DNA from: Saccostrea echinata
Taxonomy: Eukaryota
Direction: 5' to 3'
Assembly: GCF_033153115.1 (NCBI RefSeq)
Contig: NW_026889758.1
Coordinates: 38,316,001-38,380,000, forward strand
DNA length: 64,000 nucleotides
In this document: positions 3,001 through 15,000 of the stretch, piece after piece
How positions within the stretch are numbered: the stretch's first letter is position 1
How the letters are laid out: every line of letters begins with the position of its first letter
Notes under the pieces: model-generated
The model's input: the letters and a program-made list of their open reading frames with translations, nothing else
Databases searched by the model: none
What the model was told of the DNA's origin: nothing
Made by a program: the position numbers and the translations under genes

Positions 3001-6000
3001 TTAGTGCTTTATCTACTTTTGTTTTCTAGTTACAGATATGGCTGGTATGACAGACTCTCAGGTGGTTCAGTATGCTACAGAGTTAAGGGATCTTCTCGTC
3101 TCTCATGAGAAGGCCAACTCACAGATAACTGCTCTAGGTAGGAATTTTACATTAGAAAACTCATTATCTGTTTAATTGACAGAATTAGAATGTCTAGCAT
3201 TTTAATTTACCTGTTTTTGCAGTTTCAATTTTCTTTTTTAAAAGTAAATATTCAAATTGTCACATTTTTTCACACATTTCTCACACATTTTGTAAAATTC
3301 TTGTTTTATAATGAAAATCAATTCCTTTTTTTAATTTACAGAGTCCTACATCCAGCACCAGAGCCAACAGACCCTCAGATCCACACTACAAGATTCAAAG
3401 ACCATGGCGTTCCATCATCTAACCAAGAAGTCTGTGGCCAACGGCATCAAAAGGGTCTACCAGCAAGTCTCAACCAACAAGTGGAAGAAGGTCACAGAGT
3501 TATCTGCCCATGTCATCCAACAGCTTGACCAACAGTCAGAACTTCCCACCTCCACCACTAGTGCAGGAAGGTCAACAGAGATGGACGAGATGGCTCCCCT
3601 CACCACCGAGAGTTTCTGCCAGCTGTACAGGAGTGCTTGAAGATGTAGTGATTTGTGATGTGTGTTCTATACTGCAGTGCCTAGACTGATTTGCCTGATT
3701 TTGGTGTTGGTGCTTCAAAATAATGTGCTGTTTTCTTTATTTCTATTATAGTGCTACAAGTTTATGATTACTGGAATATGTTATACATGTATTAATCATT
3801 GCATACTATATATGATTCTAAAATAAACATTATATGAAAAAATACGCATTTCTTTTTTTTTGTAGGAAAAAATTGAAGAGGCACAATATAAAATTGTAAA
3901 AACTGTAGTTTATTCCAAGTCTATTTAAAAGATAAATGTTGATGTGTGTCAGGTCAACTTAGCATGAAACAAGTTACAGGTGCTAAATCAAAATGCTCTA
4001 TTTGTGACACGCCCTTCAGTGGTGCCTCAGAAATATTCATCTTTTAGAACCTATGGTTTAGATATATAAATTCCTGTCGACTACTATCAATTAAAACATG
4101 ATGTTCAAGCTTAGTTAATCCAACTGGGGGAAAATAATACGAGTATAATGTAAATGCAATGTTTTCTCCACAAAATCAACAATGAATGATAAATTTTCAT
4201 ATCCATGAGTTGTCCAATATTATTTGTTGATGAGCTGTCTTTATACTAGATGTCATGGACCTGGAGTTTACATTTGATATGTAATTCCTTACCAAACACA
4301 CACACACTCACTTTCTTTATCACAAAACTATCACAAATTACCCAATATGGGTGAGAATAAACAATCCTGAGGCCTGAAACTTTGACCCTCAGAATTTCAA
4401 AATGTTAGCATGGCCCCCTGCTTATCATTATCATACAAACAATTTGTCTAGTATAAAGACAGATGATAGTGTGAATAAGCATTTTCGTTTACATTTATGA
4501 TGAACTCTCTGGTTCAACCAAGAATAAACTTGAACCTTTACTACCTAAGGATGCATGCTTGCATTTAATGACTTTTCATGGCCACATTGTACAATAAATC
4601 ATGATGTTAAATACACCCCTTATTGTGGTTGCACCCTGTCATTTGGGGTCATGATTTGAACAAACTTGAATTTTCACCATTTGATGATGCTTGCATGACT
4701 GATAAGGGCTTTGCTCTTCTTGAATTTGTTATTAAATATCCCAATGTAAAACTTTGATCCTTTGTTGAAACTTTTCTTCATTATCACCCTAAAAAAGGGG
4801 AAATCTTCTTCATTTGAAAAATTAAAACCCCATTACCTAAGGTTACTCTGTGCCAAGTTTGGTTGAAATTACCTAAGTGGTTCTGCAGCAGAAGATGGAT
4901 ATTGCAAATATTATGTGTATTAAGGATCATGCTTTATGCCAAAAAATTGGAGGGCATGCAATGAAGCAAATCTATAATACAAACAGAACATATTTATGAC
5001 AACATATCTCGAGAATTTGATCACTGACCTAGCTAGCTCATATAATAATACCAGTAGAACAAGTAATACAAGTACACTGAGGCTATAAATAGTTTAAAGT
5101 TATTACAGTATCATTCCATCTATATTCCAACTTCAGGAGATTTATTCTTACATCATTTACACAACCTACATGTAACTGTTTGATTTTAAAAAATGGATTT
5201 TTATATCTTTAATAACTGGCATTACAGTTCTTGGGAAAAAAAATAATTAAAAAAAAATATTTACCATCTACTATGGCATGTCAAACGTTGCAATATTCGA
5301 TCTTTTCCATTTGCAAATGGAAAATTATTGAATACAAATAAAAATTATACAATACAAATAAAAATTATACAATACAAATGGAAAATTATACAATACAAAT
5401 GAAAAATTATATATGTACAATACAAATGAAAAATTATACATGTGCAATACAAATGAAAAATTATACAATAAAAATGGAAAAGGTCGAATATTGCAATGTT
5501 TGACATGCCATATTCTACAAGAAACAATTTAACATAATCATTTTAAACACAAATATATATAATTAATGAGAAATACATGAATGTTTGATTGAACCACAAA
5601 AGAAACATAGAAGAATATATTGTACATTTAAAATCATTATTTCTGGATAACTTTCGGTATTTCAAATGGAAAATACATATATTTCAAAAAGATTCTGTTG
5701 TACTTTGTCATTTTCATAGTCAGCCAAGTCATGAACATTGGTGCCCTTATTTGATGTGAGGAACTTTATCACCCAAGCAAAAAGGAAATTTCTAATCCAA
5801 AGATTAATTGATTGTGTCTACTACTCCTACTAAGAGGAAAACTATGTAAAATACCTTAAAGAACGTGCTCAAAACATCACATTATAAAATTGCTGTACTA
5901 ATTTCAAAAAATGCTCTTTGTATGAATTCTCTAAGGAGACTGTAGCTCTACTCTTGTGTACTTATAATAAAGAAAATATATCTTAGTAGATTTTGCTTGT

Positions 6001-12000: not shown

Positions 12001-15000
12001 TGTTCCAAGTTTTACAAATTATAATAAAAGCACATAGAGCATTAAACTTATATTCCTTTATTTCTATTTTTTCTCTTTAAAGTATTCATAGCAATTCTTC
12101 AATGAACACCTTATGGACATGCATGCATTTGTGCTATACTGACTGATGTTCCTTTGTTAATTACAGAGTCCTACATCCAGCGCCAGAGCCAACAGACCCT
12201 CAGATCCACACTACAAGATTCATAGACCATGACATTCCATCATCTAACCAAGAAGTCTGTGGCCAACGGCATCAAAAGGGTCTACCAACAAGTCTCAACC
12301 AACAAGTGGAAGAAGGTCACAGACTTATCTGCCCTTGTCATCCAACAGCTTGACCAACAGCCAGAACTTCCCACCTCCACCACTAGTGCAGGAAGGTCAA
12401 CAGAGATGGACGAGATGGCTCCCCTCACCACCCAGAGTTTCTGCCAGCTATACAGGAGTGCTTGAAGATGTAGTGTTTTGTGATGTGTGTCTTGTGGTGA
12501 TGAAGCGCTCAAGATCTTTAGAGCATTGATGACATGATAAACAATTTCTTTTATTAATTAGTGCTTTATAAAAGACTTAGTGCTAGAATCCTACTTTTCT
12601 ACATGTTAATTTCACATATGGTTCAATATGTACACTGGTCTGATACAGTTTTATTACATAATTGTGCTATGTTATTATATTTATATGAATAAAATGTTTT
12701 ATTTTAAACACTTCTTTTATTTTCATTGCAGAATAGGTCAAAATGATACAGGTTCAAAAGCAAAGAATAGAAAAGAAATTGAAAGTTGTATCAAACTGTT
12801 AAAAATTCAATCCTTTGTGAGGATTATATCAGTTTGATATAGAGGATACTGATATCCCATCCTGGATATGATTAAAATCTTGAAATTTTATTGGTGGAAG
12901 GTATAACGTGTAGAACAATATGATCTTGCCTACTGACCTTATATACAATATACAAGAGTTAATATTCCCCTCCATGTGAGCTACTGACCAGATATCAAAT
13001 CCATACGGTATGATACCCCCTCCATTCCTCCATGTGACCTACTGACCAGATATCAAATCCATATGCCTCCTAAACATGACAAACTGACTAGATATCTGTA
13101 CTAATTACATACTGTTTCCATGTTATCCTTTGAGGTGCCTCACAACTGACATTTAATCTGACAAAAAGACAGATTTTATTCAATGGCTAAAGAATAGTTT
13201 GAACAAGCTTCACTAAGTGAAAATGAAACCTCTCAGCATCAATATATAGAGACTACGATAATACAGAAATATATATTAGTATCCTTCAAAAAATACATAT
13301 TTTTACACCTTGACTTATATGAATTTTTTCAAGGATCCCACATAGTTAAGGAATCACAACCTAGTTAGTAGAGTATGCCAGGGCATCAATGATAGTTGGA
13401 AACGTGGGATAAATAAATTATCCCACGTTTCCAACTATTATTGATGTCCCTGGCATACTCTACTAACTAGACAGTGATTCCTTATATTTTCATTTCATTG
13501 TGAAATAAAATTGTAAATTTAGATTTTAAAAATGTAGACTAATAGATTTAAATTAGACGAGGCCTCACATGTTAATTTCAATAGTCCCCGACCACTGACA
13601 CCAAACACAAAGACAGCCGCACGAGAATTACATGCATATTAGGCCTCCTTAGCGTCAGACACAAAGACAACCGCACGAGAATTACATGCATATTAGGCCT
13701 TCTCAGAGTCTGACCTTTCGCTTGGCGAAATTTACATTCCGGTAGAATGATCAAGAAATCAACTCAACTAACTTTCAAAAATTTATCACACAGAAAACAA
13801 ATAGAAATCGAAATATTTCTGTATTACTTCTAAGAGTCTACATAACTGACACTACAATACACATATCTTGCTTTACTCTACTAATTTTCTCTGTACCACC
13901 AGATAAATTGTCACATTTATATATTGACAATCACCGATTCCTCTACCCTAAATACTGTGAAATCACTAAATTTTGTGGGAGTTTAATTTTCATTGTTTTC
14001 ATAGTATGAAGAGACCTATGAATTCATATTCCCCACAAAATGTTAAAATCCCATATTGCAGTATGATTTTTTTTCTTTATCCAATCCCCCAAACCAGTCA
14101 TTTTTCCTCAAACAACAAAAAATTTGATCCCATGAAAATAAGCGATTTCAGTATAAAGCCTTGGTAGTGTTTATTCATACACACTGAAATTTCAATATCC
14201 ATGTTTCCTATAACATGCATCTTTTAAGTTCTAGTATCACCTTTGATATCTTTTATTACAAAGCCAGATGCCCATGATTTTTTTTCTGAACTTTCCATAG
14301 TCTATTCAAACAAATCTACATGCTTGCTATATTGTCTGTTTAACTTACCACAGCCTGTTCAAACAAATCCCGGACTTTCTCCTCAGACTCTCCAGAAACA
14401 CCTGATACAATCTCTGTGGCCGCAATTTTCAGAAATGGCAAATTCAGCTCCTGAAAAATGTTTAACCATTTTGTATAAAAGAATATAGGAAATTTTCAGT
14501 TAATGATCAGTTCAAATGTCTACTAACTCTATGACAGCACTGCATGTGCATTTCAATTATAAGATACAAATATTTTTATCTGGAAGTTTTTGTTAAGATA
14601 CCTGATGAATGCTTATTAGTTATCTCAATGCTATATACTTCAGTTACAAACATTTATAGGGCAACAGCAATACTGTAAATATATTATATTTAGCAAAATT
14701 GATTTGACAACAAGTTGGTGTAGATTTTATTTAGTGCTTTCTGAACATGCTAGATATAAATATAATACGGTATACACAAGACATTTAGCCACATATTTGA
14801 TTAAGCAGAAGGTGCCTTCCACGAAAGGCACTAAATAGAATACACTGCCAAATGTAATACCGCAACAGATAATTTAGTAATCACCAGCAAAATCTATCAT
14901 ATTCCTCCTTGGCCTTGTACACATCTTTTCTTAAATTTCATTATATTTTAAAATACACCAATTTGCTTACTGAGATAAACAATGTGGATAAGAACATCCA

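Follow-up and report, generated by a model that had tools for sequence, protein, structure and literature searches.

A tandem array of small two-exon genes antisense within a large NVL intron of the oyster Saccostrea echinata

The nested genes and their host intron

We have analysed a stretch of 64,000 nucleotides (nt) of the Saccostrea echinata genome (assembly GCF_033153115.1, contig NW_026889758.1, positions 38,316,001 to 38,380,000 of the forward strand), hereafter the window, which is numbered from its first letter. It carries three copies of a small two-exon gene on the plus strand, all lying within one large intron of a minus-strand gene that best matches NVL. The copies were delineated by a direct-repeat search of the window, followed by alignment of the copies with one another. 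The search returned three plus-strand direct repeats of ~1 kilobase (kb) each within 2650–12750. In the alignment, each copy consists of an ATG, a 100-nt exon 1, an intron of 204–208 nt and a 299-nt exon 2 ending in TGA. All three introns are in phase 1 and share an identical donor, TAG/GTAGGA (..CTAG/GTAGGA), and acceptor, TTACAG/AG, the slash marking the splice boundary. The coding features are as follows.

3038–3137, plus strand: copy 1 exon 1, 33 codons plus 1 nt from the ATG; translation equal to residues 1–33 of XP_061174586.1
3342–3640, plus strand: copy 1 exon 2, 2 nt plus 98 codons plus TGA; translation equal to residues 35–132 of XP_061174586.1
9086–9185, plus strand: copy 2 exon 1; translation equal to the start of XP_061174587.1
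9391–9689, plus strand: copy 2 exon 2; translation open; contigs of two public runs (X2 and X3, described below) join 9185 to 9391
11859–11958, plus strand: copy 3 exon 1, intact
12167–12465, plus strand: copy 3 exon 2, broken by an in-frame stop
12223–12225, plus strand: in-frame TAG of copy 3, where copies 1 and 2 have AAG

The repeat search and alignment thus bear out the three two-exon units of 100 + 299 nt with a conserved phase-1 intron that an earlier note on this DNA had described. When the exons are translated one at a time, copies 1 and 2 stay open throughout. The codon split by the intron of copy 1, G/AG, encodes Glu, and exon 1, this residue and exon 2 together reproduce letter for letter the S. 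echinata RefSeq protein XP_061174586.1 (LOC133183669); copy 2 is likewise identical to XP_061174587.1 (LOC133183670), and these two database entries were used as the full-length sequences. The gene, which the note had called unnamed, is therefore already in RefSeq under both of these identifiers, as 'uncharacterized protein'. Its description as a 132-amino-acid (aa) gene in three copies holds for copies 1 and 2 and fails for copy 3, owing to the in-frame TAG. We conclude that the array consists of real protein-coding genes, two of them intact and the third a probable pseudogene. The gene models, the family to which they belong and their arrangement can be stated with high confidence.

Positions 8100–14000 were compared with the contigs of four public sequencing runs, whose identity as RNA is a guess. 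These contigs cover exons, 3′ untranslated region (UTR) and dispersed repeats, and most of the intergenic and intronic sequence is free of them. In two contigs, one of 463 nt from run X2 and one from run X3, 205 nt (9186–9390) are skipped with GT..AG ends, so that the predicted 9185/9391 junction is reproduced exactly in related oysters. At 12 of the 14 listed differences the X2 contig carries letters of the copy 1 type, and it has private changes such as D18N in addition, which identifies it as a likely mRNA of the copy 1 orthologue in a related oyster. All runs agree on A, a non-reference letter, at 9584; hence none of them derives from the reference individual. We also considered an intron in the 5′ UTR, suggested by a contig joint from 11711 to 9040, and rejected it, the ends not being GT..AG and one extra letter lying between them. 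This joint more likely reflects an insertion or deletion in another individual, or a contig artefact.

The host gene is represented around the array by the following minus-strand features, all read on that strand.

14349–14450, minus strand: NVL exon upstream of the large intron, ...DLFEQAV followed by gtaagt
2020–14348, minus strand: NVL large intron of 12,329 nt with GT..AG ends, housing the whole array
1902–2019, minus strand: NVL exon downstream of the large intron, with the Walker B motif, after ttttccag

Both flanking exons find their best match in human NVL (residues 357–393 and 280–320). Among solved AAA ATPases, NVL (9bji_A) scores 109.6 bits against 85 for the next hit with one exon, and 83.4 against 63.8 with the other; these D1-domain exons thus place NVL ahead of VCP/Rix7 by 20–24 bits. 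On the evidence of these two exons, the best match for the host is NVL, a nuclear VCP-like AAA ATPase. The GT..AG ends uphold the boundaries of the 12.3-kb intron as originally drawn, and the statement that other NVL introns are shorter than 1 kb agrees with the ~100–700 nt measured for the introns neighbouring it. The coding exons, upstream blocks and AATAAA signals of the array (2700–12693) all lie inside the intron on the opposite strand, which supports the small genes being nested antisense in one NVL intron.

The NVL acceptor that follows the large intron is itself tandemly duplicated with a 50-nt period (1991–2085, minus strand), the sequence acaatgttttccag/GTAG(T/C)AGCACCTTGTGTTCTGTTCATTGAT being present twice. 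The duplication places a decoy acceptor, together with a 30-nt pseudo-exon start, a short way ahead of the genuine acceptor. Use of the decoy would add 50 nt and shift the frame.

Outside the coding exons, three further elements recur in every copy.

2700–2773, 8730–8803 and 11503–11576, plus strand: conserved upstream island, 86–91% identity (repeat search)
2878–2888, 8906–8916 and 11679–11689, plus strand: CCAATGAAATC box (alignment)
3822–3827, 9969–9974 and 12688–12693, plus strand: AATAAA downstream of each copy (sequence reading)

The upstream island spans 60–74 nt and is located ~265–340 nt before the ATG. It is 90–93% identical between copies 1 and 2, compared to ~50% for its flanks, and is a candidate core promoter or start of the 5′ UTR. 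The 40 nt preceding the ATG are 95% conserved and resemble a splice acceptor (ttctag/ttacag). An X3 contig spanning 9665–9921 gives copy 2 a 3′ UTR of at least ~230 nt. The same UTR contains a 51-nt insertion (9700–9750), a partial repeat of the coding end and UTR start (GAAGATGTACAGGAGTGATTTTGTGATGTGTGT), which is absent from copies 1 and 3. Each copy therefore does have the upstream block and polyadenylation signal of its own that had been ascribed to it. Independent regulation of the nested genes is plausible, given this block and their position on the opposite strand.

Copy 3 and the evolution of the array

Copies 2 and 3 are each embedded in a larger tandem duplication unit.

8236–10915, plus strand: tandem duplication unit with copy 2 (repeat and genome search)
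11009–13928, plus strand: tandem duplication unit with copy 3, sharing 87% identity with the copy 2 unit across 2 kb

As a consequence of its TAG, copy 3 does not encode the 132-aa protein in this assembly. It has no protein model, and the S. echinata RefSeq matches are limited to LOC133183669 and LOC133183670. A contig of a further run (X4) covers 12142–12399 and agrees fully with the intron end of the copy 3 type, yet it has A at 12223, restoring AAG (Lys); the nonsense codon is thus confined to the reference or, at the widest, to its species. The same contig lends some weight to the possibility that all three copies are functional, the TAG being an error of the assembly or consensus, or else a low-frequency null allele that the sequenced individual carries. 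The stop aside, a single amino-acid change separates copy 3 from copy 2, and the splice sites of copy 3 are intact. Against this, the X4 contig comes from another individual or species and carries three copy-1-type letters as well, so that it may represent an orthologue rather than an allele, and the Thr that distinguishes copy 3 (Ala in copy 2) is absent from the S. echinata RefSeq proteins found. We therefore regard a functional copy 3 as possible, though distinctly the less likely alternative.

The three copies differ markedly in their degree of divergence. Copies 2 and 3 are 98–99% identical in the upstream block and exons, with 87% identity over the units as a whole, and copy 3 is a recent tandem duplicate of copy 2. 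By comparison, only ~40–60% of the intron and flanks of copy 1 can be aligned with those of copy 2, and copy 1 is old. Even so, copies 1 and 2 share 97% identity in exon 2; of the differences there, 2 are synonymous and 7 non-synonymous. Synonymous divergence (pS) between these copies is 0.03 in exon 2 versus 0.29 in exon 1 (Fisher p ~0.001–0.004), and the overall ratio of non-synonymous to synonymous divergence (dN/dS) of copy 1 with copy 2 or copy 3 is 0.33–0.40. In a tree of 13 oyster proteins, paralogues cluster by genus, the Ostrea and Crassostrea clades receiving at least 97% support. The homogenisation of exon 2 between old copies, together with the grouping of paralogues by genus, suggests gene conversion. 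The data point to long-term birth-and-death evolution with gene conversion centred on exon 2, a better fit than a fresh expansion; the array would change by tandem duplication, by conversion of exon 2 and by loss of copies. The cluster had initially been described as expanding, a description at odds with a nonsense codon in one of the three copies, with the 2–4 genes of other oysters and with the grouping by genus.

The identity of exon 2 might instead stem from constraint at the nucleotide level, imposed for instance by an RNA structure, an antisense element or a reading frame that overlaps the coding one. In all copies, a second plus-strand frame of exon 2 is also open (3190–3528, 9368–9577; 3510–3689, 9559–9717, 12335–12529), and identity between copies continues for ~30 nt beyond the stop codon. 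The alternative open reading frames (ORFs), however, have no homologue to support them, and the differences within exon 2 are mostly non-synonymous (7 of 9), as would fit recent homogenisation followed by drift. Moreover, the clustering of paralogues by genus, seen in three genera, is a classic mark of concerted evolution. We consider nucleotide-level constraint improbable as the source of the identity and retain gene conversion as the preferred explanation. Exon 2 being open in both other plus-strand frames is probably a by-product of its composition (guanine–cytosine content ~50%, few T-rich codons). The alternative open frames could also bear on the unusual nucleotide conservation of this exon.

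Protein family and predicted fold

Copy 1 exon 2 used as a query retrieves 16 proteins, from oysters only (E values 5e-50 to 3e-29). A profile of seven oyster proteins, searched against 1.84 billion representative proteins, gives 44 matches at E ≤ 0.001. Every named match is molluscan, annotated as 'uncharacterized' or 'hypothetical' and ~125–148 aa long. The species represented are Pecten, Mizuhopecten, Argopecten, Ylistrum, Mytilus, Dreissena, Mercenaria, Pinctada, Potamilus (a unionid), Crassostrea virginica and Lottia (a limpet), with E values of 4e-22 for Pecten, ~1e-12 for Dreissena, Mytilus and C. virginica, and 1.6e-4 for Lottia. Among the sequences found so far, the family therefore appears to be confined to molluscs, and the subfamily of the window copies has been found in oysters only. 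The initial characterisation of the genes as lineage-restricted was too narrow for the family, which covers bivalves and one gastropod, and applies to the window subfamily alone.

The S. echinata genome contains ~14 family loci. Two distant members with equal scores form another tandem pair, 10 kb apart on one chromosome (C9:4806778-4807002 and C9:4817083-4817307), and others are located on contigs C60, C30 (two), C27, C14, C56 and C22 and at C9:42187157. LOC133172286, a 28%-identical paralogue on contig C54, has the same phase-1 intron and the same CTAG/GTAGG donor; in this gene and in the three window copies the intron follows the conserved ...L-L/A-L of helix 1. An alignment of 27 family members yields the consensus L..LL..H.KA..Q...LD.YI..L.QQ.F.S.L.G..G.....LT.KSVA.GIK..Y.Q....KW..VQELS..I, a variable linker and a D..A...T..FC...R.. 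C-terminus. Arg 130 occupies the only invariant column other than Met. The C-terminal helix ends in [F/Y/H]-C-x-x-x-R-x-x, which in the window copies reads SFCQLYRSA. The motif HxxAxxQIxxL...GVRNMYYEY, which the earlier note had ascribed to an uncharacterised invertebrate family, does fit distant paralogues, for example HDRAVRQIIAL...GLKRMYKEY in Dreissena.

Searches for a known identity were negative. The exon translations and the 27 family members gave only sub-threshold noise in Pfam, and two profiles searched against the sequences of the PDB found nothing below E 0.07. The ESM Atlas returned no feature match, and its structure matches, all with template modelling (TM) scores <0.5, are unrelated bacterial proteins. 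A literature search on six LOC and UniProt identifiers yielded no paper, and the supplements of a 2025 S. echinata transcriptome paper do not mention the array genes.

AlphaFold2, run on the 27-row alignment, predicts helices at residues 6–49, 53–96 and 117–131 with a predicted local distance difference test (pLDDT) score of 86.8 and a predicted TM score of 0.61, low confidence being limited to residues 99–110. This model replaces an earlier, poor one built from 7 close sequences (pLDDT 61.9). The predicted fold, in which we are confident, is a long antiparallel helical hairpin, followed by a disordered acidic Ser/Thr/Pro-rich linker of variable length and a conserved C-terminal amphipathic helix. 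It agrees with the long helices, Ser/Thr-rich linker and conserved tail proposed at the outset. Of the 27 members, 22 have a net basic hairpin and 25 a net acidic tail. One member from Dreissena, 417 aa long, has ~300 residues of low complexity between its hairpin and the C-terminal ...HCEFYRGE, which indicates that the tail is a tethered module in its own right. The protein has no hydrophobic N-terminus, signal peptide or membrane segment. A secreted peptide precursor was also considered and was dropped for lack of a hydrophobic N-terminus.

As to function, there is perhaps one chance in three that the protein is a soluble intracellular coiled-coil adaptor or regulator acting by helix–helix contacts; its tethered C-terminal helix may either fold back against the hairpin or bind to a partner. 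A more specific proposal is that it belongs to an undescribed, mollusc-specific class of self-regulating hairpins, in which the tethered acidic C-terminal helix would gate a basic hairpin with oligomerising, membrane-binding or nucleic-acid-binding activity, by analogy with the autoinhibition of ESCRT-III, and in which the antisense position within NVL would tie transcription of the array to that of this essential ribosome-biogenesis ATPase. We regard this as a long shot. Slightly less probable still is a role as a miniature membrane-remodelling subunit of the ESCRT-III-like or PspA-like kind, whose basic α1–α2 hairpin polymerises while the acidic C-terminal helix autoinhibits or docks. Hairpins of ESCRT-III, Snf7, CHMP, Vipp1 and PspA do recur at the top of both fold searches (9ftl, Z 11.4; 8qfv, Z 11.1; 8wb7, Z 11.1; 4whe, TM 0.62), and the asymmetry of charge between basic hairpin and acidic tail resembles ESCRT-III. 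The scores for Snf7, Asgard ESCRT-IIIB and Vipp1 (Z 10.8–11.4) are, however, equalled by unrelated hairpins, including those of IpaB, ING, prefoldin and chemoreceptors, and all are below the level that is meaningful for helical proteins (noise level, Z ~13). Furthermore, none of the 27 members matches Pfam Snf7 (PF03357) at E ≤ 1, and the family protein, at ~130 aa, has only one further helix (117–131 in 132 residues). ESCRT-III proteins are ~200–240 aa long, with helices α3–α5 or α6.

We consider it likely that the window holds an array of small two-exon plus-strand genes, nested in an NVL intron and belonging to a mollusc-only helical family, which has been shaped by tandem duplication, gene conversion and copy loss. 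Three points weigh against this interpretation. The runs are only guessed to be RNA and come from other individuals or species, and their contigs are strandless, which limits what they say of plus-strand transcription of copy 2. The matches that Foldseek against the PDB and VIA-align returned are exclusively generic long helical hairpins, with Z ~10–11, below the noise level of ~13 for helical models, and Foldseek E values of at least 0.2; with such generic, sub-noise matches, the protein is not filed under any known family. Finally, we found no experiment or annotation that bears on the function of the array proteins.

Intron repeats and comparison with known systems

The NVL intron does contain dispersed short repeats, which could suggest that the unit is a piece of a dispersed transposon or retro-element whose ORF is not a host gene, but the protein and its 2.7-kb unit occur at three places only in the 923-Mb genome, all of them in this intron (100%, 87% and 77% identity), the protein is conserved over molluscs with a conserved intron position, dN/dS is <1 and Pfam gives no transposase or reverse-transcriptase match, so that this reading is refuted for practical purposes. 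The genome-wide count thereby supports the genes not being part of a dispersed transposon. The dispersed repeats proper are ~225 nt (10346–10572) and ~385 nt (6732–7113) long, and at least 40 scored copies of each, 75–90% identical, are spread over many contigs. They are like insertions of a short interspersed nuclear element or a miniature inverted-repeat transposable element, and would pad the NVL intron.

Two other parts of the intron have a repetitive character. At the 3′ end of the copy 3 unit, positions 13400–14000 attract many short contigs from all four runs, with a depth of up to ~800 in X2, many variants and odd joints; this segment has the look of an abundant dispersed repeat, transcribed or of high copy number. 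Between copies 1 and 2, a short tandem repeat of the spacer (5345–5527) gives rise to a repetitive minus-strand ORF with IIFHLYC units.

The array is ordinary genome architecture: taxon-restricted small genes, in tandem, nested and already automatically annotated. It opens no long-standing question. What our analysis adds is a definition of the family (mollusc-wide, ~14 loci, a conserved intron, no Pfam entry), a confident fold prediction, the stop codon of copy 3 and the evidence for gene conversion in exon 2. The array provides a clean and compact case for the study of molluscan orphan gene families, or of transcriptional interference at nested genes.

The closest known counterparts of the window copies are the RefSeq genes of other oysters: LOC134230570-573 of S. 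cucullata, LOC128177223-225 of Crassostrea angulata, LOC105345240 and LOC109620850 of C. gigas, and LOC125650505, 506 and 508 of Ostrea edulis. Like the window copies, these encode proteins of 130–133 aa with the same architecture, at 2–4 genes per species, and the near-consecutive LOC numbers in these four other oysters suggest that the genes are adjacent there too. For none of these models, LOC133183669 and LOC133183670 included, was a name, domain or publication found.

Structurally, the protein is predicted, like ESCRT-III/Snf7 and PspA-Vipp1, to form a long antiparallel hairpin of ~90–100 residues, and it is likewise basic in its N-terminal half and acidic in its C-terminal part. It differs from them in having no sequence or profile similarity, half the length and no α3–α5, and the structural score is within chance for helical proteins. 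The N-terminal dimerisation domain of ING4/ING3 and Eaf6 of NuA4 are also small antiparallel hairpins (4afl, TM 0.59–0.75; 8cok, Z 10.3; 7vvz_V, Z 9.9), which serve as oligomerisation or scaffold modules. Here, too, the sequences are not similar and the score is no more specific; in addition, ING and Eaf6 belong to chromatin complexes with further domains.

The arrangement of the genes recalls intron 27b of human NF1, which houses OMG, EVI2A and EVI2B on the opposite strand. In both cases, several small genes, each a transcription unit of its own, lie antisense in a single large intron of an unrelated housekeeping gene. The NF1 trio are unrelated genes, whereas those nested in NVL are tandem paralogues of one family that appear to have exchanged sequence by gene conversion.

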